Both the position numbers and the translations under genes were made by a program. Below, one piece after another: positions 2,817 through 19,229 of a stretch of 64,000 bases of DNA; position 1 is the first letter of the stretch; the number at the start of each line of letters is the position of its first letter. Under the pieces are notes generated by a model. That model did no database searches. It worked only from the letters and a program-made list of their open reading frames with translations, and had not been told where the DNA came from. The DNA comes from Trichoplax adhaerens (lineage: Eukaryota; Animalia; Placozoa): the NCBI RefSeq assembly GCF_000150275.1, contig NW_002060973.1, positions 62,001 through 126,000 of the forward strand, read 5' to 3'.

Positions 2817-3669
2817 TTAAACTTTCTGACTATTTATATTTTTTGCTTTATTGTTCGTCTTTCGAGAAGATCCTGCAGTTTTTGTAGTTGTGGACTCTGT
2901 TGCCTTGGATCCTCCAATAGTCTTAGTTTTCTTAGATTTCGTAACTGTCTTTGGTTTTTTGTCACCGTTGGAAATGCTATCGCCATTTTGAGTAGTTTGC
3001 TTCTCTACTTTGGTGTTGCTAAGACCAGTGTCAATTCTACTTGTCGCTTTTGCCTTTTTTTTACTTTTGCCTTCCCCTTTTTTTCCATTTACAGTATTAG
3101 AAGAGGTATTTGATGTTAAGTTGTTAGTAGAGTTGGGTTTTACAGATGGCTTTAAATATGGTCTGCTTTTATCTCTTCCTTTCGCTGCTTTAATAACGTT
3201 TTGCATGGTAATAACTTTTTGTGCTGCTTCACTAAAAGCATCATCACAGCTAACTTTTTGTCCTCGATGGTTTTTCTAAATGGACAGCAAGATAGAGAAT
3301 GATAATTTTTATAATAATTTGTTGCAACTTGACGTCTTCATATTAGTATCACTCGTTTGAAACTGTTTGTAGGTCAATGAGTACCTTACCTGATTACATC
3401 GACGACACAGATTGGGTGCATACATTTTTCCCGGAAAATCACCACATAAGCAGTTGATACAAAACCGAACTCCACAAAACTTACATCGATAAGTCTATAG
3501 TTAACAAATGATAGAAATGCTTCATTAGCATGCATATGTTTATTAATCTAAGTAGTCAATATCATGGCTTTTACTAGGATACATCCGCATATCAATGAAC
3601 AGTAATCGATTAAGAGGCTCTTATTTTATCATTGATGGTTCACATTTCTGAATGCTCCTTTACCTGCAT
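2817..3669 (-). CDS. Small (~189 aa) protein with an N-terminal Cys-rich, putative Zn-binding module and a Lys/Ser/Thr-rich basic disordered tail
   Basis: Manual model: exons 3669-3664 (ATG CAG|gtaaag), 3494-3390 (tag|TYRCKFCGVRFCINCLCGDFPGKMYAPNLCRRCNQ|gtaagg) and 3275-2817 (ttag|KNHRGQKVSCDD... running into ORF 2817..3206). Both introns are phase 0. The first exon is the least certain. Confidence 0.7.
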
Positions 3670-6600
3670 TGGTCACGGTACTTGTACTTATGTATACTGA
3701 TACTATTACCGTAAATTTAGAACATAGCTTGCGAAAATTATATTCTAATTCCATTAAAGTATCATGAGTTGGAATCTGCTGACAGACTAAATTGTTAAGA
3801 TATGGCTGCATACTGAGTATAGTATCAATTAATATTATCAAAATTCTCATTTGCACGGTATGGCGTACAAATTAGCCTAGTTATTGTATAATTAGATACA
3901 TACTATAATTGCGATACATTTACTACGGTATAAAATACTCAGAGTATCTGTCTCAGTGTAACTATCGTACAAAATTTAAAACATCATATTTCTAATTACT
4001 GAGCAAAAATATAGCATAAAATTGTCCATTTAGTTCATATTATAATTTCACTCTTTAACGACGTACTTTCTGTCTATTAAGCTGACTACGATAGCAAAAT
4101 ATATGTGTAAATATATATTAAAGAGACGTAAGCTGATAATGGCGCCACCCTTTACAGATGGTTTTTACATTTTTGCACGCTTTACTTTACCGTGTCTGTT
4201 TTCAGACAGCCCCACCGACACATAATGAAATCAGTTTGGCCTACCACAGTTCTTAGAGAAAGTACTTGCTAATGTTTTTATTTTCCTAAAGTTTAAGAGA
4301 AATGATTTATCACAACAGGCTCTCTATGGTCAATAGTTTACTTCTATTATTCTCCTATCTTCGATAAACGACGGAGAAAAAATTGACATTGCTACCATTG
4401 CATCATTATGCTCTATGTAATTGCTCCTTATTAAAAACTGTTTCTAGTCGAAAACTAATATCTCTCTTTCTATGATATATTACACCGTAACTAGTTTGTC
4501 TATTTTCGCTTTACAAAACATACCTTAAATCGTGCCCTGCTTAAAAGTGCCTCTTTTTTTCTCAGCACAGAATAGCCAGGCTATTTCATTGCGGAAATTA
4601 ACAGTGATATTGTTAAAAGCGCTTTATATTATCCAATCAAATCTAATAGCAGTGCTAATTAGCATTAAAAGCAGTTCAACACTTGTTACAACTGTATGAC
4701 TGTTTATGGTTAGTCTTCTTATTGTAGCTCTAATTTGTATAGGCTTTACTGCTAGCCACAGTTAAAGAATTGCCTAATTAATTATAATTATAATAAGAAT
4801 ATTTATTACAATTACAATAGTCAAGCATTGAATTAGTCTAGTTGCCAAGACGACATAAGCAAATTTTTCGTATCTAAAAATGAGTCATTTTGTTAAGGCA
4901 GGACCGTATCTAATCGATTCATCCATCAGTTGTAATTTGCGTTTTAGATGATGATATAATTATCAGGGTGATATATTCAAGTTATTGACAAACCGGGAGA
5001 CAAGATGTGTACAGCCTTTAACGGAGAAAATTTCGACGTAGTACGGGTGTAGCAAAATGACATAAATGCTTATCAGTACCGATGTGCGAAATCGATTATA
5101 TACAATTATAATGCTGTTAGGGTATGTTGCATTCGTATATGCTTCCGATATTAAGCAGCAGTTATATTATAATTAACCTAATGGAGATGTAATACTAGAT
5201 TTTCTTCGCTAGCTCTTTAAGTATACAAATTAATATCAGCAACTATTGGTAGTCCTTGTTAAAAGTATAAAGATTAACTCTATCCAATCTGTATTGTAAT
5301 TAAATTATAATTGCCGCTCAATAGCGTGATTATATAGGATAATTTAATCATAGTAATTAGTATTATGAATATACTTGTACCTATCAATTAAAACTACGTA
5401 CCATTTATGAAGTTAAATCTCGTAAATAACTCTTATGATTCAACACTATATTATATTGACTTGGTAATTAATCTTGCTTAATATTGGCACAGCACCAAGG
5501 CTACAAAAATCGAGGGTAAGCTTCGGTTTAAATTGTTTGAATGGTAAGTGGATGGTGAGAAGTTTGGTCTATACCAATCGACTACGTGAATTACTTAGAA
5601 ACTAATATCAAAAGTTTGATTAAAAGTAATGCAAGCTTATTTGCGTCTCATCAATAATGACAGTTTTACGTACAATTATCATCTAAGCTTAAATGAAGTT
5701 TCCTTAAATCGTCTCACAGTTTCGTTTGAATAAGAATTCGATAGTGCATGAAATAATTCAGTAGTCTGTCTGGGGCTGTGTGCGAGTATATATGAGCTAT
5801 TGTACACTATAATTCGATGGTTTTTGCTTACGTCTACTTTAAGCATGACCATAATCGAATATGACTATAAGTATGTACATAGCACAACTAGCATGTAAAT
5901 TTAAATAAAAATATCTTATTATTGACTCAAATAAGAAATTTAATGGAATACGAATAATACTATAAGCTCTTTCGGACTGTATACAGGGCACTGCATACAA
6001 CCTACACCGTATTATGATGTAATAAATAAATCTATATGTCCTCATCAAATCCCATAATATGAGACTGTTCTGTCAAGTTTCTTATATGTAGTCCTAGATC
6101 ACTTGCTGAGATACCGATAGGGTATTTTGAGTCACAAATATACCTTTTTGGCATATACCTTATATCACTAACTCTGCGTAGATGATACATTTCTCACGAA
6201 GTGTTACTTGATGAGACAGTTCAGTTGTTGAAGGATATTTACGAGATCCTTGCCCAATGCCATAATAAAGAAGTGCTATGCAATTCCCTATATACGGTAC
6301 AGTTCTAGACAGATTAGTGGATTACGTATTCCATTTTTGAAAATATATCGTTTTTTACCAAAGTATTTCATTTGATATGAAACCTTAACTTTAGCAAAGT
6401 AACACACTTCTCATGTAATATTATTAGAGTAGATTCTTAAAATTATTCAAAAGTCGACCTTCGACAACATAACTAACTAATATAATAACGTTACGTTGGG
6501 TATGTACTGTATAGTATTATCTTACCTGAGCTAACAATATATAGCATATTGTATACGTCGATAAAGAACATTTGCGATCGCAAATCGCAAAATAACAATT

Positions 6601-8005
6601 TGTTAATCTGTCATTCTTGCTTGTGATGGATATGCATAGAGGGAACTGTATCACATACACTCTGATATCATGCAATGGCCAAAGATATACGTTTTATAAT
6701 GATATAATTGTCTAATCTGATAATACTGGATGAGAGGTGTCCTATCTTGCTAAAATTCATAATATATTGCCATTTGTCGGTAATGTCTAATTATTACCGT
6801 AAAATAATTTAGTACCTAATTTACGGTTGTACGGAGGGAACTACTGCATTTCACCCATACTCATATCAGGGTATTTGGTGAAGATATTTAGTATATTCTT
6901 TCGCAATATAACATCTAGCTCAATATAAGTACGTAAATGAAGGTTCATTATTTTACCGATAAAGTTAACAGTATACTAGATACGGTGGTAATGTATATTT
7001 AATACCCTATACGTATGGGCATGTCCAACGTGATATGAATCCGTGAATGCGCTAAAAAACAACCCAATAAATACTCCTTTAGTATCCTATACCAATGAAC
7101 ACATAGTCAATTTGTGAGATAGTATGATGCTTTTACAAGAATTGATTGTTTTGTACTCTCTACTAGCTTTTGATAGCCGCTTATTTAAACTATTGTCATT
7201 CAAATGACTATTTATGATATTATACTGTCTTTCGACATGATGATGATGCTGTCAATTTTGGATTACTATTGGTTATATCTGTGCATGTGATATATTAGCA
7301 TAATGGTTCTGTATGTTGGTTTCTATGGATCACTAAGTCAACTTGTTGCTGTCTAAAATTACAGCAACTTTAAGAGTTTGATTTCAATTGCTATCCAACT
7401 ACAGCGTAATAAAATTTCTTACGGAACTTTATCAATGTATAAGAAAATTGTAAGACTTTAAGGTAGGATAGAATTGCACCGATTACTCTCTTGATTAAGG
7501 AAATCTTTTCATCGCGCATTAATTTCCTATCGCAGAGGCTTACTACGTTGATATTGAATCGGCCTCGTTAATTAAATTTAATTTATTACCTAGTTACGGT
7601 ACAACTGCTACAGTATCTGAATCATTATAACATTATAACCTTATAATACTAAAACAACAATTAGGAACTAGTTAAAGTTAGTACACTTTCCTTCTAGAGG
7701 AAGTGATCGTATTATAGAAAGAATTGAACGATCATAGAACAAGATTATTTTATGATAAATGAATGCAGTTGCTTTCCAAATACAAGAAAACTATTTAGCG
7801 TAGTATATGGTGAAGAATGTATACAGATTGTAGCTATTCAACATTCACTGACAGATACTCTATAAATGTGTAATGGCAGTATATCTAAATGATTTTCTTC
7901 TCGATGGCGCTCTTAAATGAGCATATAATTTCCTACTATCTATTGAATAATTAAATCTGACAGATGGAATATCGCTTGCTTCCTGTTTTTTTAGATTAAT
8001 AGCTT

Positions 8006-11000
8006 ATGTCTTCATTACGGCTGTCACCACTTAAGAGCCCTGCCCAATATGAGGGGTTATCGGCCGAGCTTGTATTTAGCAGTACGTATGAAACAAAATC
8101 TGATCAGTTTAATTTGAGTTTTTTACCGATAATAATGTCTTCACCTTCGGCTTAAAAATCAGAAAAGCCTCTCCCACTCGGGCTAGAAAACGAAAAAATT
8201 AAAGATCCAGCTATTACGGCGTCATCTTATAGAGTCACAAATCCACCTTACATGGCTCGATTACATAATCCAGATGGGGGTTGGATCCCAAGAAATAATG
8301 ATTTAGATCAGTTCTTACAGATTGATTTAGGTCGTCTTCGAGCAATTACAATGATTGCAACTCAAGGACAAATTTGTAAAGGTGTTAGCCAATGGGTTTC
8401 TTCGTACTGTATTTGGTATAAAGAGAAATCATCAGAAGCTAGATGGACACCGTACAAGGAGGGGAAAAAATCAACCAAGGTATGCTCATAAAAGATTATT
8501 AATATGAACTGATCATTATTGTAACATGCACCTAAGGGCTTTGTTACAATTTTAATAGATTTTTAAAGGTAATAGTGACTATAATTCCGTAGTCACACAT
8601 TTAATTCTACCCCCATTTAACGCCAGAATTATCCAATTTCGGCCATTGAGTTGGTGTTCACGCGGAATAGGAATGAGAGTAGAAATTTATGGACTAGATA
8701 GTTCATTAACCGGTGATTCAAAATATCGTTGACTATGCGTCAGTGATTGCATTACAGATGGATTGCAAGCCATGATATTGATTTTAATCGAGCTTTTAAC
8801 TGCAATTCGATCAATTTCCAACTGATATCGTTTATTCATGTATAATTATAATAGCAAGCTATTCTGTTAGCACTAAAGAAGAAGAATTAAAATGGGATAC
8901 CGATCTCCATGCGGTACAACAGACAGGTTACTTCGATTGGACTTATCACCGTGTCATGCAGGCAAGTTTATGCATTAATTAATCTTATTGATTTCATAAT
9001 ACGTCCTACAGTAAAATCTCCTTCCTGAGTACCAATAATGATGATTCAATTACTCTCTTGTACTGTAACAGGGAATCGTAAAAAAAAGCCCATACCTAAA
9101 AGTAAATCATAATTCATCAGATCCACCGAAAAGACTAGCGACTACGGAAAGGAGACGGTAATGGCTACTAGAACGTATTCCACTGATTTCTATTTTGCAA
9201 TGATCGAAGCAACTTATTAAATAGAAGATAAATTTTTCTCCTATTTCATTAGATTATCGAATAATTTAAAATATAAGCTGAACCATAACATTCCTACTCG
9301 TTCACTTCAAGATAGGGGGTATTTACAATACAGCGCAATTTTAATTTATCTAAGTCAAACATCGTCTCTAAAATTCATATACTGCTCAGGACACTGTCCA
9401 CGAGTCTGTTTACTGATGTTAATTGGAAGGAAATTGTTTTTAGGAAAGCACCTTTGGAATCCAATAAACATCAACATCAACAAGCGGATATTGTTCTAGA
9501 AGTACAAAAGGTATGTTCAAATTGTTTACTTTCTTGAATTAATTCGAACATCTTCTCAGTTTAGATTGTTCAATGCTTTAGTGTTCTTAAAGGTGCATAA
9601 TATTTTATTAAACAATTTGAGCTTTGATTTTCAACTTTGAAGTCTTTTATTTATTCGCATATTCTTCTTAGAAAGCTCAATTTTTCTAACAACTGTTGCC
9701 TTAAGGAAGTTTCTTTAAATCGAGTTAATCGTTGAATATTATTTTAAAATATAACAGCCAATTATTAACATTACCTATACTATTTACCGAGTTATATCAT
9801 TAAGCTCCATCTACCGTGATATTAGAGATGATTCGATATTATAATAAACCGTCATATAAAATATGCGTAGATAAATAAGATACTATCTGATCTTATATTA
9901 TAAAAATTAATTTTCCTGAAGTACTGTATATGCGTAAATACAAATAATGCCATGGAGTAAGGATGATTTGATAGATTACAAGACATCGATGATTCGTGGT
10001 ACAGGTCATCATTAATTACATCTTTGGTCATCACTTACAGCTTATCTATAATCTAAACCATATAGGATCATGTAAAAACTGTAAATGATCAAGCAAATAA
10101 GAATGTCTTCGATCCAAAGATGTATTTTACCGATGGAGACACTTATTATTCCTACACAAGTAAGTTATAAATTTCTAGAATGGGATTTACCACTTGCATT
10201 AAATTCATTTTTAATGTGCTTCTGCACTATTTTTGCTATACTGAATCTAGTTAGTCAGCCTGAAAGAGACATATACAGTGGTAGCTTGGATGTAGATCAC
10301 GAGAGGACAAACCATTGCGTAAAAATCGTTATAATTTCCAACGCATCAGGTAAAATTAATTATTTCGTCTATAAGAGCGCTCCTGCGATAGTATGGAAAG
10401 ATAGCAATGCCTAAGTTAATAGTAAATTTTTTACTATTAGATACGATAGAAGAAAGAAAAGCAATAAGAGTTGATTTATTCCAAAAGCTAATGTATTGCT
10501 GCCGTGAAAAGGGATTGCAACTGCAAATTATAGATTATAATTGGGAAATGCCAGAGATACAAAACTATGATCCTGAAATAGTTTCCATCATCCTTAACGA
10601 CATTAAAAAATGCAGTCAATCTAATTCTTCCAGTAACTTCATGGTAAATTTTAATAAAGCATAAAATATACACGCGATTGTGCTGACCGTGCTAACTAGA
10701 TTGAGTTGGAATCCAAGTTATACAGTAGATTCTACTCTTAAAAATTATTATTACTGTGTGTAACAGCTTATCGCTATCGTTAAAGAAGGAAATGAATTGA
10801 TATAATGTATTTTTTGTTTCAGATTATTGTAGGCCAAAAGTATGGTAAACGTTTGGTTCCTGATAAAATTAAATACGAAGAGTTTAAGTATTTAGAGGAA
10901 TCACTAGATAATCAACAGAAAGAATTTCTTAACCGCTGGTACATATATGACGGGTCAGATAAAAATAAGCACTATTACCTACAATTACACCTAAATGAAC

Positions 11001-14000
11001 ATTCCTACCAAGAAGGCACAGAAAAATCGCCAATGGAGATTCTACAGTCTTTACATAGCATCATCTATGCTGCCGCTATAAAAGCTATAAGAAGCAATAA
11101 TAACTATCATAAATTCATAACTTCCGGTAAGTAATTATTTAGATCAATGCAGTGCGATAACTTTCTATCCAATATATCCATTACGTCATTAGCATGAATT
11201 TATACCTGTACTAATTAGAATTATTACCATTTAGTCTTAGAGGCGGAAATTTTTGAAAGTATGGCAAATTTAGAAGATCCAAACAAATGTTGTATATGTT
11301 TAAACCGGGATTTTACTAATTTAAAAGTAAACGGTGGCTACACTAAAATACTCAATAACTATATTGATATGAGCGACGATAAAAGTGCTGTGGATAAAAA
11401 GGCTAATAAAATGTTAACTTCAATGAAAGAAAATTTGTTGCCAGAATTTCTGTCAGAGAAAAATATTATTCACTACCAATTGGAATGGGACGAAGATGGC
11501 GTTAACCCAGATTTCAACGGACAGCACAAGGATTACATGACATCATTCATTGAGCATGTCGAAAAGTTCGGTACAGGAGTTATCGAAAATATTAAAAATA
11601 CCTTTGACGAATTAGAAAATTACGACTTACTATCGGAAGATATTAAACATCATGCACGAATTCTTAAATATTATTGCCAATATTTTCGTGGAAGAAGGAA
11701 AGCTATTCAAGCCATTGAGGATTACTTGAGAAGGTATAGTCGAAGCCCACTTGTTATCCATGGACCAGCCGGCAGTGGTAAATCTGCAGTCATGGCTGTA
11801 GCGGCAAATATAACTAAAAAAGTTATATTTGCTAATACTATGGTCATTGTGCGCTTTATTGGAAGATCACCAGAATCATCGAGTGTTCGACTGCTTATTA
11901 ATAGTATTTGCCAGCAGATATGTAAGGTATATGGGCGTCGCATAATTGATGTTGAGAGGGTAAGTTTTCTTGTTAAACCAAAATTTTAGTACATCATTCA
12001 TCGCCTTGATTTGAAATATGTGAACTCTTACTGTTGAACAATATTCATTTATGACAATGCAATAGAGAACCCATAGTACCGCTACAATGCATATATTGGG
12101 GAGGCCTGTTAGAAAGAAACTAGTCTTCACTCGAAAATGTTTAATGACTATCGTGCGGAGGAATCTCTTGATACCTTCTTAATTTATCCTACTTTTAAAT
12201 TAATAAAATAATTTAACAATGGACCCTAAATCGTCTTACATTACAGATAGTAACTTAATTATAACTAGTCAGGACCCGTGGACAATCCAAGATCATGATT
12301 TTCACATTCTACAAATTTCATTCTTCACGTGTGTACTCCTACCTACTGTCTTCGCGTGATCTTGATGGCGTGCGTGCTAAGTTGTGCGTAAAGATTCCAA
12401 GCGCATAATGCTAGTATACTGATAATATACGCTTACAGTATTATCAAATTCGGGCTTGATATTCTCGTAATGAGACAAGAATAGTGCATAGCAGTAGGCA
12501 GTTTCATATTAAAGAAATAAATTGTGTATGAACATTTCGACACTTATTCATGTACTATTTCACAGATTCTTATCGTTTTATCCCTTCCGTAGAAGCGATG
12601 CCATGTACAATGGCATTGTTATTGTACATGGTATACGAATATTATCCAACATTGGACTTAGTATGTTCATAACAAGATAAGAATCAGTCATTTCAGTACA
12701 TTATCTTTTACTAATGGAAGTAAATTGTGCCTAATATATCTTGGCCATTTGCTCATAAGTATGACCTTTGCACACTTTTATGCCGTTATTATAAGTGATG
12801 TTATACGAATGCAAATAGTGCATTTTGATTCCTGGACTTCATTAGCTCGTCATAATATAAGAGTCAATATGTTATCAGTGTTTTGTCTTATATTAAGATA
12901 AAATTATATACAGAATATCTTGATTACTTGTTCATACACTGTTCTACAGCTCCTGCAGTTTTATCCCTTCATTAAAAATGATAATATGCACAAATAATAA
13001 CCTTTGTCGCAGCGTGCTAATACGAATTTTTTTTCTTCGGGATTGCTAGAACAACAAGTCCCTTAAAAGTAAACTACACGAGTGCCTGGCTATGCCGAGC
13101 TATTCGCAGCCATTAACCCTTTATCTTGATGGTTTGGATCAATTATCGAACGATTATGGAGAGCCAGATTTTGATTGGATACCTCGAAATTTACCGGATC
13201 ATGTCAGTATTATTGTATCAGCTACTAGCGAACCTAGGACTAGAGCGTTTGCAAAATTAAAGGTATACTTACGCATTTCCGATAGCTACATTTTAATAAT
13301 AGCATAAATTATAGATTTTTCTGCTTTTCTAAATCTAAAAGATATTCAATCGGTAATCTATAAATTCTTGCTTTCGATGCTTGAAATACATATAACACTT
13401 CTGTAGTATTATCGTAGATACGTAGTGAAACTTTCTTTGTAGTATAGCACCGTATCTTAATGGTAGCATAGCTTTTAGATTCATTTTGCTTTCTAAAACT
13501 TAAAGTCACTTTATAGTTACAACCAGTCAGCACGCGATAAATACTTGATTTTAGCGTAGGAATAAACATAACACTTCAGTATCATTATTGTAGTTGCGTG
13601 CCGGAGTATCAGACTATATGCTTAATATTTTAATAGCAATATAACTTGCAAATTCTTCTACTTTCCTAAATCTTAAAGACATCTAATTCTTAGAATCAAT
13701 CAATAGTCAGTAAATCCTTAGTTAGCAAGATTTCTGCAAATTTTGTACTAAAGGTCGATACGATACTGATGAACCGAGACAATAGGTAGCGGGATTGAGT
13801 ATAGATAACGCTAGCAGACCGCTCTATCCAAATCGAAATTGTTATCTTATAGTTTAAATAATACAGCCATAGTATAAGCTTGAAAGTTAAATCTATGCTA
13901 ATATTTGAAGTAAGTCGAATTAATGAGTGATCAGAGAATTTATTTCTAGATATCTATCGTGCTGCAATAGGATTTAGTTTAGAATGCTTGCTGTCAAAGA

Positions 14001-17000
14001 AATCATAAAGGCTAAATGTTTTCTACTCTTCATTAACAACTTCCTTTGATATGCTTACCTGTATTAGGGTATTGTGAAAGAAGAAGGAAACTTTTTTGAT
14101 ATCCAAAAATTGAGCTCGAATGACATCAATTACATCGTCAACCAATTTATGAACGCGAATCAAAAGTCTTTGACTTCAGAAATGCGGCAATTGCTAATCA
14201 GTAAATGTCAAGCTTGTCCATGGCCGGCTTACGTTAATACAGTTATGTTATTAAGTCTTACCTGGAAGTCATTTACTGATTTGAGTAACTGTAACATTCC
14301 TACCGCTATGAACGAATTGATTGCGATTATTATTGAAAACTTAGAGAAAAAGTATGGTAAAATTTTGATGCAACGTTTATTAATTTATATTACTTTATCA
14401 AGAAAAGGTTTAACAGAAGCTGAATTGGAAGATATTTTATCCTGCGACGATGAAGTTTTGCGAGCAGTTTATCCAAATCGTGAACCAACAGTTCATCGTA
14501 TACCAACCTTGTTATGGATCAGAGTTCGAAATGAATTATCACCCTTTCTTGATGAAGCCTTCGCAGACGGATTTTCCGTTTTGCGTTGGAAGTTTCGAAA
14601 TTTTTCTGAAGTAATACGTAAAAGATACCTATCCAATGCAGACGATAAAACAGAACTACATTCCGTATTGGCAGATTACTTTTCCGATAAGTGGAAAGAC
14701 GGTAAACCATTTGAACGCTTAGATAGAATCACTGTTTTAGCAAATCGCCTTATTATGACCCAACCAGCTATTCTATCGTTGAGAAATAATGATGTGTTTC
14801 AGCCAACATTTAACTTACGTAAATTAAGTGAATTACCATATCATTTATTATACGCTCAAAGATTTGAGCAATTGAAAGAGCTAATGTGCAACTTTTTATG
14901 GCTACTTAGTAAGTTAGCAGCGACATCTATACATCATGTGCTTAATGATTTTGATATGGCCATTAGCAGTATACCAGGTAGTCAGCAGGATTTAAAATTA
15001 GTAAGGGAAACGTTAATTATGTCATTAGTTGCTCTTAATGATGATCCTGCACAACTAGCATCTCAGCTAATTGGCCGATTAGCCACTAAATTCTCTAGTG
15101 AAGGTAATTCTTACGCCAATTACCGTTATGTTAATATGCTATTACAACAAGCAGCTGATCCTGCAGTTCCAAGTTTGATTCCTCCTATCCATTGCGCTTC
15201 GTTGACACCACCAGGTGGTTCGCTTAGTCAATTACTCTCTGGTCACACTGGATCTATCCTTGCATTAACAGCTTCATCGAATGGCCATACTATATTTTCT
15301 GCCTCTTGGGATAAGACAATTAAACTATGGGATGCACGTACAGGATCATTAATAGGAACGATGGAAGGCTTAAGCACTATCAGAGAACAGCAATTGCGTA
15401 GTTTATCTAATTCGGCTAGTGAAGCTAGTGATTTAAGAGAAATTGTAAGTGGACTATCAACCAGCGCATATAGCAAGCAACTGAATAAAATTTGGTCCGT
15501 TGGTAAACGCTTGAGTGATATGAAATTATGTTGTCAAGATCGATTTTTAGTTACTACATGTTGGAATGTAGTTCAGTTGTGGCGTTTGGATCAAATGAAA
15601 TGTGTAGTAGAATTTGCTTCGCATGATGATATCCAGCATCGAGCAGCTTGTGTTGCTAATGTAACTAACAAGCAAGTATTGGTAACCTATGATGAAAGAG
15701 AAATGATCATTCATTTATGGAATATCGAAAAGTTTGGTCAATCTGTTCGCGATTTCAAGAGTAATTATCATAACATGAATTCAAGTTGGAGAATATCTGG
15801 AGCTTACGAAAATTTAGTAATGTTTATTAATTCGCCACAAGCCGTAATGCATGTCTTTAATGTGTCTAACGGTGAGACAATGCATCGTGTTCAAATCCCT
15901 CCTGCCGCAATGTATCGCTCGTTAATCACAACAAATGGGAGAATACTTCTTACCAACGATACTGATGATGCTGTCTCAGTTTGGGATGTCCGATCAGCTC
16001 AATGTCTTGGCGTCATTAAAGCAACGGAAGTCGATGAGTTATCATTTGATAATACCAGTTATGCCTTCCTGTCTACTAATAATAATTATTACATGATTAC
16101 AAATTATTTGAAAAACAGCAATATCCATAAATATGATTTATCAACTTTGGAAAGGAGTCCATTTTCTAGTTTACCTGTTGATAATATTAGTACATTTGTA
16201 TGCTCACCATCCTATGTGATTACAGCGGCGCACGCCGATCCAAGGATATTTGTTTGGGATACTAAAAGAGCTGAAACAACTGCTGCAACAGAATCAACAT
16301 TCTGCCCCAATTGGATTCAATTGGTCCGAAATGATGAAGATTATGTAGTCGCTTATCAAAAGAGCATGTCTTCTTTAACCATTTGGTATTATCCAACGTT
16401 TCGTTTGATCAGAACTTTAACGAATGTCAGCGAAAATATGTTTCATAAAGATGAATTAACCATCAATAAGGATATCTTAGTTTTAAGGAAATTACGAGAT
16501 TTAATCGTGTATGATTTTGAAAAGAATGTTATTGTCAACAACATTCGTGATGTAAGGGAAATTAGCGGTGATTTTCCTTACCTGACATCATATTCTGTCA
16601 TTGGTGATGATCGCATAGCTATTTTGCCACGTTCTGATAAAGCCATGTATATTATCAAAGTAAAAACCGGAGGTGTTGTTGCTCGATTACGTAAGGATGT
16701 TGAAGGTATTGAAAGCAAAGAAATTGTTGGCATGATGGTCAATCCACGCAGGACTGTTGCTGTTTTATTTGTTCAGTTTGAGATGCCCTATTTTACAGAA
16801 TTGATTGTATGGAATTTTCGAACATTTCATTCCACCATTTTCCACTTTGATCACAAAGAGCAGCGTTATAGCGAATTTACTATGTCATGTCTAAGTCCAG
16901 ATGGGCAATATTTAGCCTATAGAATGGAAAATCGCATGTACGTTAATTTATTATGCTTAACTGAGGGCAAAGTCAAAGCAAAACTCTTTTGCAACGCTGA

Positions 17001-17451
17001 TGTTCGAGCTATTAATATGACATCGGATAAGTTAATCATTAGCTATGGTAGTTCAGGCAGTATTGGCATCTGGGATTTAGTACTTGAGCGTTGGGTCCAC
17101 ACGCTTGCCGGGCATGTTTCCGGCATAAGTAGAATTGTGCTTACACCGGATTGTAGAATATGTGTCACTGTCGCCGATGGACTAGATTGCTCTGTCCGTA
17201 TGTGGGATGTTATAAAGCATAAGCAACTATCAGTTTTTACATCTGATGTTAAAATTTTCCAAGACAACATTGTTTTAAATAATGAAGGGAATTGTATTAT
17301 TCTCCATATGCCCGGTATGGGTTCAATTATGACTTTGAGATTGGTATCACCAGATTCGTCGGAAAATAAAACAGTCGCCATAGATGATTCTTTTTCAACG
17401 GACGCTGCCAAGGAAAGTAAAGTCATCGATGCTTCTGTTGCTATAAGCTAG
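8006..17451 (+). CDS. F5/8 type C (discoidin) + DUF4062-like + NACHT/STAND NTPase + WD40 repeat protein, NWD1/NWD2-like, ~1982 aa
   Basis: 14 phase-compatible exons: 8006-8081, 8163-8479, 8559-8712, 8855-8961, 9072-9157, 9253-9318, 9390-9510, 10066-10159, 10251-10349, 10441-10643, 10823-11126, 11235-11959, 13050-13262, 14068-17451 (5949 nt). Discoidin motifs PLGLENEKIKDPAITASS, ARL, QFLQIDLG, IATQG, FKGN, MRVEIYG. NWD-type N-terminal motifs DTIEERKAI, QIIDYNW, GQKYG. Walker A GPAGSGKS and Walker B LYLDGLDQL. GLTEAELEDILSCDDEVL and FNLRKLSELPYHL are typical of NWD/TEP1 relatives. WD40 repeats GHTGSI...SASWDKTIKLWD and GHVSGI...DCSVRMWD. Confidence 0.88.
8962..9071 (+). other. Non-canonical GC-AG intron in the discoidin-NWD gene
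   Basis: Donor CAG|GCAAGT matches the GC-AG consensus and the acceptor is tgtaacag|. Using it keeps the frame open between exons 8855-8961 and 9072-9157. Confidence 0.65.
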
Positions 17452-17497
17452 AATAAACGTATTTTGGTTATATAGCGTATCCTGTATTGAACTCGGT

Positions 17498-17795
17498 ATC
17501 ATTTACTATATTAGCCTTGAATGGCTTCATGCTCAAAACCCATTCTATGTAATATACTCCCTAAGTGCCTTGATTTTAAGGGATAAACAATGTCTATTGA
17601 TATCCCGTTTTTTAAATTTGCTATCAATAATTATATATATGCATACTTTCCATCATTGACTATATTAGCCTTGAACGGCTTCATGCTCAAAACCCGTCCT
17701 ATGTAATATACTCCCTAAATGCCTTGATTTTAAGGGATAAACAGTGTCTATTGGTATCCGGTTTTTTTTAAATTCGCTATCAATAATTATATATA
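17498..17795. repeat. Direct tandem duplication (2 copies, ~154-bp period) just after the NWD stop codon
   Basis: Copies at 17498-17640 and 17652-17795 share ACTATATTAGCCTTGAAyGGCTTCATGCTCAAAACCC...GCCTTGATTTTAAGGGATAAACA...GCTATCAATAATTATATATA with few substitutions. Confidence 0.93.
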
Positions 17796-18633
17796 CTGTA
17801 AAAATATAGCAGCAGTAATACAGAACAACAGTTGTTAAAATACACTGTAATACTGCACGATAATCGCATACGTGTATACCGTAGCGTATAGACGCGTATA
17901 TTAGATAGTTTTACTAATAAACATGATTTTAAGGCAATATCAGTTGCGAAATCCTAGTATTACTGTGCTTGATTAAATAGCGGCCAAAACATGAATGTTG
18001 TCTTAGCTTGTAGATACTGCAAAGTAGTGTCTCAAAAAGATTCACGTAAAATGACAGAATTTGTGATTGCTCTATTTCATTAAAATTAGACCAATAATTA
18101 ATCAATTAATCAGAGCATCAATGATTTATTAATGAATGCGTTCAAAAATATGCAATACAGCACAATGTGTATTCTGTTCAATGACACGTATGGACGCAGA
18201 TTGTTGAATACAAAACGATAATTAGCAGAGTTTATTATTATTTTCCGCTGCAAAGTTCAATAACTACAATTATACCTACTAATGCACAGATCAGTTCTGC
18301 TAACACTCTACAGTTTTGACTAGCAGTTAAGGATCTACTTTTGTAAGATAGATTTGTATAATAATAGACGCTTAAACTTGATAGTGAACCGGATCAATAT
18401 TGTAGCCTAGTGATGTTTCTTATCGTGTAGTTGAATTAGAATCTTTTAGATGATTTAATATACTGTAATACACGAAGGAGTATTGTACCTACTCTTTCTT
18501 GGTACCAATGGTCTATTTTTCCCATTTTTTATTACCGATATATGATTTTGTGTATGATAATGTTAACTTATTGACTAAATGAACTATTTCTTGTTTTGGA
18601 TAATAAATTGGTCATAAATTTGTTTAAATTATT

Positions 18634-18790
18634 TTGAGGCATCTCGATCAGAATGATATGAAAGTTATCTCTACCATAAAAATACGTAAATCATTAAAAT
18701 TTACTGCCAGCCGCAATATTTTAAGTCATTGGCAACGCGGTGCATCATTGCGCTTAGAAGCTTACTCGTATCATGAAAACTGCAGCTGTA
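18634..18790 (+). pseudogene. Possible decayed C-terminal fragment of an F5/8 type C (discoidin) domain
   Basis: FTASRNILSHWQRGASLRLEAYS resembles the discoidin C-terminal strand consensus (ARxxRxxPxxWxxxxSLRxExYG; compare SWCSRGIGMRVEIYG at ~8650-8693). No intact gene structure surrounds it. Confidence 0.3.
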
Positions 18791-19229
18791 CTGTATATTT
18801 GTTCGTTAATTTTACCATGTCTCTCAGATATTTTCGCTGAAAGGGATATCATCACTGGTGATGACTTTTCGTGGTGTACTATTGCGCTTATAAATTTATT
18901 ATTAATACTGCATGATGGGCTTTACTTGAAGAAAAGTAATACTAAAGTTTCAGTAAACTATCCGTTAACTTTGGTAAGATTTCAGCCATTCTCAGCGATG
19001 GGTAATGTGCAAGAAAGCGAATGAGGAGACTGTTGTGCCAAAGAGCGTCAGGGGCGGGAAATATCACGTAACGGAAATCGCACGTAGCAAACCATTATGA
19101 CAGGAATGAAGTGATAACTACAGTATACAGTACACGTACTGTACTCGGTGTACAGTATACTGTACTGTAGTGCATACGCGCAAATACTTGCCCTGTTACT
19201 GTAATGAATCAGCAGCGTCAAAAGCTATG

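Follow-up and report, generated by a model that had tools for sequence, protein, structure and literature searches.

A 64,000-nucleotide stretch of the genome of the placozoan Trichoplax adhaerens (contig NW_002060973.1, positions 62,001 to 126,000; hereafter the window, whose own numbering is used throughout) carries on its plus strand, at 8006-17451, a predicted gene that joins a discoidin domain to the parts of an NWD-type switch. The best reading of this locus is that it encodes one cytosolic protein of discoidin, NIR, NACHT and WD40 parts, in which the discoidin domain is a targeting or ligand-binding module; judged from the sequence, this reading is probable on balance. The gene model comprises 13 exons (E1 to E13) and 12 introns, with a coding sequence of 5,883 nt, a multiple of three, and a product of 1,960 aa. 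The protein would consist, from the N-terminus, of an F5/8C discoidin domain, a linker of about 160 aa, a divergent DUF4062/NIR domain of TIR-like kind, a NACHT-type P-loop NTPase, an NWD winged helix with a helical domain, and WD40 propellers. The host assembly amounts to 105.6 Mb in 1,414 contigs with a GC content of about 33%.

The reading frame is kept at all junctions on manual inspection, and the split codons yield Lys, Ala, Ile, Asp and Val. An initial annotation of the window had counted 13 introns of fitting phase; the phases agree at every junction, and the introns number 12. The four junctions it had named for the first half of the gene (8712/8855, 8961/9072, 9510/10066 and 10159/10251) are all present in the sequence. 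It seems likely that all exons are joined in a single mRNA, and the junction that decides for or against a fusion is 9510/10066, between E6 and E7.

A discoidin domain lacking the marks of secretion

All Pfam and homology searches of the model were made exon by exon. The F5_F8_type_C profile (PF00754) is matched by 8165-8479 over profile positions 2-84 (52.1 bits against a cut-off of 28.2, E 9e-14) and by 8559-8711 over profile positions 86-127 (21.7 bits as an exon fragment). E2 and E3 thus contribute the two parts of one complete discoidin domain with a phase-0 intron inside it, and the complete domain claimed by the initial annotation is borne out by the coverage of the profile. For the discoidin domain, the protein library gave 2,365 hits. 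The closest solved structures are a factor V-like C2 domain, neuropilin b1, the FVIII C2 domain and the lactadherin C2 domain (E 4e-20 to 1e-10), and the predicted domain is of the animal C2/b1 type.

These counterparts are extracellular and closed by a disulfide bond, whereas the domain described here has Lys and Leu in the positions of both flanking Cys residues and no signal peptide. A disulfide from the first to the last residue is typical of secreted discoidin members, though not strictly defining. The flanking Cys residues are present in about 65-70% of 291-407 related copies of the domain. The predicted start encodes no signal peptide, as had been stated before, and the 4.7 kb upstream (3300-8005) contain no candidate for a signal-peptide exon either; an upstream exon adding such a peptide was rejected on this ground. 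Elsewhere in the genome the discoidin exon has a single paralogue, a weak one.

The NWD part of the predicted protein

The second half of the model follows the order of NWD1-like proteins, with which it shares the DUF4062/NIR-like domain, the NACHT P-loop with Walker A and B motifs, the HTH_NWD1 region, the helical domain and the WD40 repeats at 25-38% identity. The DUF4062-like domain was part of the initial annotation, and the evidence for it is divided: E9 and E10 align to the DUF4062 region of NWD1-like proteins (tblastn with five NWD1-like queries, E 1e-7 to 4e-5, and 2e-7 to 3e-5 for E9), and the Pfam profile PF13271 (DUF4062) has no match on E8, E9 or E10 searched singly. The splice 10349/10441 rebuilds SNAS-D-TIEERKAI, to be compared with the NWD consensus SSTFTDTxxERNAL, and the splice 11126/11235 rebuilds the SV of SVLEAEI, to be compared with the family motif SVTEIEI. 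The two rebuilt motifs serve well as internal checks of the NWD half of the predicted model. Both Glu residues of the pattern S-V-T-E-x-E-I, which marks the putative catalytic region, are kept (SVLEAEI here, LVLETEI in the placozoan fragment P0273).

E11 matches the Pfam families AAA_16, NACHT and NPHP3_N. The NACHT profile (PF05729) reaches 20.2 bits on E11 alone, against a cut-off of 26.7, over profile positions 2-65, the domain being split over three exons. The Walker A motif GPAGSGKS in E11 and the Walker B motif LTLYLDGLDQL in E12 both align to NWD1-like proteins (tblastn E 1e-9 to 1e-5 for E12), and both are intact, in agreement with the initial annotation. The last exon, E13, matches HTH_NWD1 (PF25469) with 60.8 bits (cut-off 27) and WD40 (PF00400) with 45.6 bits (cut-off 27), the latter confirming the WD40 repeats described earlier; many further propeller families and a weak APAF1_C match accompany them.

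The genome contains five to six loci with an HTH_NWD1 winged helix of NWD type. Four of these, apart from the gene under study, lie at G000:C1414:6351925-6386987 and G000:C1414:220230-221944. Three of the four are clustered in tandem, and their bodies, of 917-1,587 codons, have almost no introns; DUF4062 motifs are much better kept in the four loci than in the gene at 8006-17451. Neither a discoidin domain nor linker exons resembling E1-E8 were found upstream of these four paralogues.

Both halves of the gene are conserved in other placozoans. E2 is 87% identical to a placozoan open reading frame (ORF) fragment, P0138, with the similarity ending at the 8479 donor; E11 is 78% identical to the fragments P0271 and P0273, with the similarity beginning and ending at the exon ends; and E13 and P0001 share 88% identity over 1,106 aa and have their stop in the same position. 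This conservation shows that the discoidin half and the NWD half are both under constraint. The fragments sit on different short contigs and are silent on the junction between the halves.

The linker and the proposed discoidin-NWD junction

Coding potential in the exons between the two halves was scored in two ways, by a codon model and by a 3-periodic Markov model; the training set for each was 5,772 codons of other genes in the genome, and stop-free random segments served as the null. E3, E4 and E6 score as coding in the frames that the model requires (p 0.001-0.015 overall): E3 with p<0.01, E4 with p about 0.001-0.009 and negative scores in its other frames, and E6 with p about 0.01 and a negative score for an overlapping frame of 92 codons. 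Pfam returns nothing meaningful on the linker exons. E4 ends in the donor CAG/GCAAGT, which agrees with the consensus save for the C (8 of 9 positions) and opens a GC-AG intron (8962-9071) between linker exons. The donors of E6 and E7 (Table 1) likewise match eight of the nine consensus positions each. The linker proposed by the initial annotation is supported by these results, E4 and E6 being coding-like, bounded by strong splice sites and compatible in phase up to the NWD exons.

GT and AG are abundant in DNA this rich in A and T, so that fitting frames alone are weak evidence. Donors matching at eight of nine positions arise by chance about 20 times per 64 kb and strand, or about 3e-4 per position. 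The end of the E6 coding signal coincides with such a donor, in a phase that fits E7; the chance of this is estimated at about 1%, which argues that E6 is an internal and not a terminal exon. E8 encodes the first strand of the DUF4062-like domain without containing a Met, and therefore needs an upstream exon; its phase-1 junctions complete the Ile and Asp codons. Upstream of it, the E7 acceptor falls on the last in-frame stop, and the open frame begins exactly at the acceptor.

One or two genes

A serious contender, though on the unlikely side, is an arrangement of two adjacent genes. The first would encode a cytosolic discoidin protein of about 310 aa (E1-E6), ending within or soon after 9511-10065, and the second an NWD protein starting at ATG 10120, 46 aa before the DUF4062-like domain, so that the in-frame link between them would be coincidental. 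This ATG, the only possible independent start for the NWD part, lies in E7 and has A at position -3, and the N-terminus that it would give is as short as those of NWD proteins with C-terminal CaaX-type boxes. AATAAA and ATTAAA motifs occur within 9537-9850, and the coding signal of E7 is weak (p 0.03-0.13). The donor of E6 and the exact beginning of the E7 frame count against two genes, as does the portion of E7 before ATG 10120, which is more coding-like than the portion after it. Two genes would also require 555 nt to accommodate a promoter and a 5' untranslated region as well as a terminal exon and its poly(A) site. Finally, the NWD clade to which the gene itself belongs has long N-terminal extensions (see below), and a 46-aa N-terminus is atypical for that clade, which is a mild argument for the fusion.

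Several further observations weigh against a single fused protein. At the junction itself, the pyrimidine tract of the E7 acceptor is modest, and the intron at 9511-10065 (555 nt) could instead house the end of one gene and the promoter of another. The coding scores of E1 and E5 cannot be told from the null, and the second half of E7 is likewise without signal. No discoidin domain was found in the 120 best NWD homologues (0/120) and no NWD parts in the 150 best discoidin relatives (0/150) by local phmmer, and a full-length fused protein was absent from two very large protein libraries, although 1,960 aa falls within the length window searched; the same library search returned no protein from the annotation of this genome either. 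No other organism searched shows the fused architecture. A census of NLR proteins in Trichoplax sp. H2 reports one NACHT-WD40-DUF4062 protein and no discoidin domain with NACHT (PMC6321704). The NACHT and DUF4062 matches of the present gene are weak, and it was therefore probably not counted there. Full-text literature searches found no protein that pairs NACHT with discoidin or FA58C. The novelty that the initial annotation ascribed to the architecture thus holds among the 120 NWD homologues, the 150 discoidin relatives and the searchable literature.

The remaining points concern function. Factor V C2-type binders insert the hydrophobic tips of spike 1 and spike 3 into phosphatidylserine membranes. 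In the alignment to the factor V-like C2 domain, spike 1 of the Trichoplax domain is shorter by a deletion of four residues that removes the membrane-inserting Trp-Trp tip. Classical phosphatidylserine insertion or lipid binding is therefore not predicted by the sequence, and the lipid sensing suggested by the initial annotation is weakened. In the DUF4062-like domain, the family motif DMRWG reads DYNWE, and the loss of its Arg makes NADase activity doubtful. With other family motifs degraded and the domain invisible to Pfam, its predicted enzymatic activity is uncertain.

A third arrangement, in which the discoidin exons form a separate gene and the NWD gene has its start at ATG 10085 and continues unspliced through 10160-10250 (a 109-codon ORF at 10085-10411), is highly improbable: so long an open frame is unusual at 33% GC, but over the first 55 codons its score is that of non-coding DNA (p 0.42-0.43), it contains a consensus donor and an acceptor 91 nt apart, and a search with its 109-aa product found no homologue, though the same database has placozoan fragments of three other exons. 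This ORF crosses the intron at 10160-10250 into an NWD exon and could mislead gene predictors as to the NWD start.

Lipid anchors in NWD-like relatives

The ends of 35 homologues with a DUF4062-like region were surveyed for lipid anchors, and a quick tree was built from E13 only. A CaaX-type box forms the C-terminus of nine animal proteins (CDIV, CVIS, CEVI, CSIM, CTIF, CLLV, CTII, CVLI and CLIV), and five homologues begin with an MGxxxS-type myristoylation/palmitoylation motif, which two more carry just inside the N-terminus (Table 1). In the tree, the CaaX proteins make up NWD1- and NWD2-type clades. E13 is sister to P0002 (99% support in the Shimodaira-Hasegawa-like approximate likelihood ratio test, SH-aLRT) within a third clade, NWD1-like and of 10 rows (99%). 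In the nine other members of this clade, DUF4062 is preceded by an N-terminal extension of 61-276 aa; five of the nine have a lipidation motif, and none has a convincing CaaX box. Lipid anchoring at one end of the protein looks like a family-wide theme in animal NWD-like proteins. The gene at 8006-17451 has neither an MGxxxS-type motif nor a CaaX end.

Downstream of the gene, a mini-ORF at 17981-18013, behind an AG, encodes a polybasic stretch followed by CCLSL and a stop; it is CaaX-like, probably by chance. As a hidden last exon this segment was rejected: it would need a weak donor, and the tail and stop of E13 are conserved in P0001, which rules out a hidden CaaX exon.

Gene model and surrounding sequence

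The first exon is the uncertain part of the model. E1 is the sole nearby exon with an ATG whose phase matches E2, and the in-frame TAA and TAG that the initial annotation had placed just before ATG 8006 are read at 7997-7999 and 8000-8002. The boundaries of E5, the short exon between 9072 and 9334/9355, are likewise uncertain. The initial annotation had also pointed to an alternative acceptor at 8871, giving ALKKKN and a stop, and this acceptor is present. It was not accepted as the principal form because E4 carries its coding signal in the frame of the 8855 acceptor; a minor short isoform may arise through it.

Table 1. Exons and terminal signal of the predicted gene, and library members of the anchor survey with lipidation-type ends
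Feature	Position	Strand	Description
E1	8006..8081	+	predicted first coding exon (MSSLRL...); ends in phase 1; weak donor GCA/GTACGT
E2	8163..8479	+	N-terminal two thirds of the F5/8C discoidin domain; PF00754 2-84
E3	8559..8712	+	C-terminal third of the discoidin domain; ends ...EIYGLD without a closing Cys; PF00754 86-127
E4	8855..8961	+	linker exon, followed by a GC-AG intron
E5	9072..9101	+	short linker exon; alternative donor 9158; placed by phase logic only
E6	9334..9510	+	linker exon; alternative acceptor 9354/9355; donor AAG/GTATGT
E7	10066..10159	+	linker exon; donor CAA/GTAAGT
E8	10251..10349	+	end of the linker and first beta strand of the DUF4062/NIR-like domain (VKIVIISNAS); no Met
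E9	10441..10643	+	DUF4062/NIR-like domain, part 2; tblastn matches to NWD1-like proteins and paralogues in the same genome
E10	10823..11126	+	DUF4062/NIR-like domain, part 3 (KYGKRLVP...); tblastn matches to NWD1-like proteins and paralogues in the same genome
E11	11235..11959	+	SVLEAEI motif (putative catalytic Glu region), then NACHT-type P-loop GPAGSGKS
E12	13050..13262	+	Walker B LTLYLDGLDQL and next NACHT segment; strong coding score
E13	14068..17451	+	1,127 codons: HTH_NWD1 winged helix, APAF-1-like helical region, WD40 propellers, stop
AATAAA	17452..17457	+	directly 3' of the stop; likely polyadenylation signal, by motif match only
CaaX-type C-termini			P0021, P0036, P0049, P0053, P0070, P0072, P0105, P0112, P0119
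MGxxxS-type N-termini			P0008, P0013, P0054, P0063, P0090

In the 8 kb upstream of the gene, a Lys/Ser/Thr-rich frame of 129 codons on the minus strand (2817-3206) is the one ORF of any size, and the 4.7 kb between it and the gene contain no ORF of more than 75 codons. Just past the poly(A) signal, a 154-bp unit is tandemly duplicated at 17498-17795 (1.9 copies, 92% identical). No Rfam family was found in 7000-19000.

Proposed mechanism

We infer the cytosolic location of the fused protein, and each step of its action, from the predicted domains and from analogy. The WD40 part would keep the NTPase off until a ligand comes, as in APAF-1 and in the 2026 work on DUF4062 cited below. The NACHT module would then oligomerise and gather the N-terminal TIR-like domains as the output. 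The discoidin domain would stand at the tip of the N-terminal extension, where it would replace a myristoyl/palmitoyl anchor and put the switch on a membrane or glycan surface.

A targeting role of this kind is preferred over that of a sensor mainly because the discoidin domain takes the position that the anchor has in the closest relatives. The place of DUF4062 as an N-terminal effector, together with the lipid anchors of the relatives, also makes targeting the likelier role. More broadly, and only tentatively, the gene may present a disulfide-free cytosolic discoidin domain fused to a TIR-like/NACHT/WD40 switch as an integrated recognition or targeting domain, whose ligands might for instance be the glycans or membranes of damaged compartments or of the animal's intracellular bacteria; the proposal is rather unlikely. 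A role of the discoidin domain as a lipid or damage sensor, or as the detector of damaged endomembranes or bacteria that the initial annotation gave as an example, is speculation.

The initial annotation had named an integrated sensor or a membrane-targeting domain. In the sensor version there is one gene, and the discoidin domain is an integrated sensor or decoy of the kind known from plant NLR proteins with integrated domains (NLR-ID); the switch would be triggered or gated by its ligand, which might be a glycan, a microbial product or a peptide tail. We consider this decidedly unlikely. It gains from the intactness of the domain and its 87% conservation between placozoans, and from the presence of neuropilin b1, a binder of peptide tails, among the nearest solved relatives; placozoans, moreover, harbour intracellular bacteria. 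In STAND proteins laid out in this way, however, sensing usually falls to the C-terminal repeats and output to the N-terminus, the N-terminal tip of the relatives bears anchors and not sensors, and a ligand cannot be read from the sequence.

Comparison with known systems

Compared with the fused protein of the preferred reading, the NWD1-like relatives lack a discoidin domain and often have an MGxxxS start or, in other clades, a CaaX end, whereas the gene described here has the discoidin domain, neither lipidation signal, and degenerate DUF4062 motifs. Only in 2026 was DUF4062, renamed NIR, recognised as a TIR-like NADase. It is the effector at the N-terminal end of human TEP1 and of bacterial defence proteins, and most eukaryotic NLR-like proteins that carry it have it at the N-terminus; human NWD1 and NWD2 were inactive in vitro (bioRxiv 10.64898/2026.09.04.749371, 10.64898/2026.05.01.722283). 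TEP1 and the bacterial NIR/DUF4062 effectors Avs2, Vulcan, Vesta and Swarozyc resemble the present protein in having the TIR-like DUF4062 domain N-terminal to a STAND or repeat sensor, and the Glu motif is kept here. They differ in that their NADase activity has been shown and no lectin-type domain has been described in them, and the present gene has lost the Arg of DMRWG.

APAF-1 offers the working model of activation. In it, too, the output domain is N-terminal and is followed by a STAND NTPase, a winged helix with a helical domain, and two WD40 propellers, but its NTPase is NB-ARC and not NWD-type NACHT, its output domain is CARD and not DUF4062, and it has no lectin module.

A parallel for the combination of parts comes from bacterial conflict systems, in which discoidin-fold NPCBM lectins are fused to TIR or kinase effectors beside AP-ATPases (Kaur et al. 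2021, PMC8195603). A discoidin-fold lectin, a TIR-type effector and a STAND ATPase thus meet in one system, as in the gene described here, and this lends the sensor some further weight. NPCBM, however, is another Pfam family, the systems are prokaryotic with their parts mostly in separate genes, and no homology to the locus has been shown.

Implications

NWD proteins are an old and widespread animal NLR-like family whose function is poorly understood. Should E1-E6 prove to be a separate gene, the locus would comprise an ordinary NWD gene and the gene of an unusual discoidin protein, small and lacking a signal peptide. If the fusion holds, the gene is a new form of NWD protein, a known kind, rather than a system of a new kind. 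Should the discoidin domain also act as an integrated recognition or targeting domain, no animal NLR-like protein before it would have had an integrated domain of lectin type, and it would be parallel to the plant NLR-ID proteins and to the bacterial NPCBM-TIR conflict systems. A true fusion would also amount to a natural experiment in which the lipid anchor of the family was swapped for a ligand-binding beta-barrel. It would show an intracellular use for discoidin domains, which in animals are regarded as extracellular. It would also point to surface targeting as a core requirement of the NWD family, and the ligand of the domain would give a handle on the place where the switch works.

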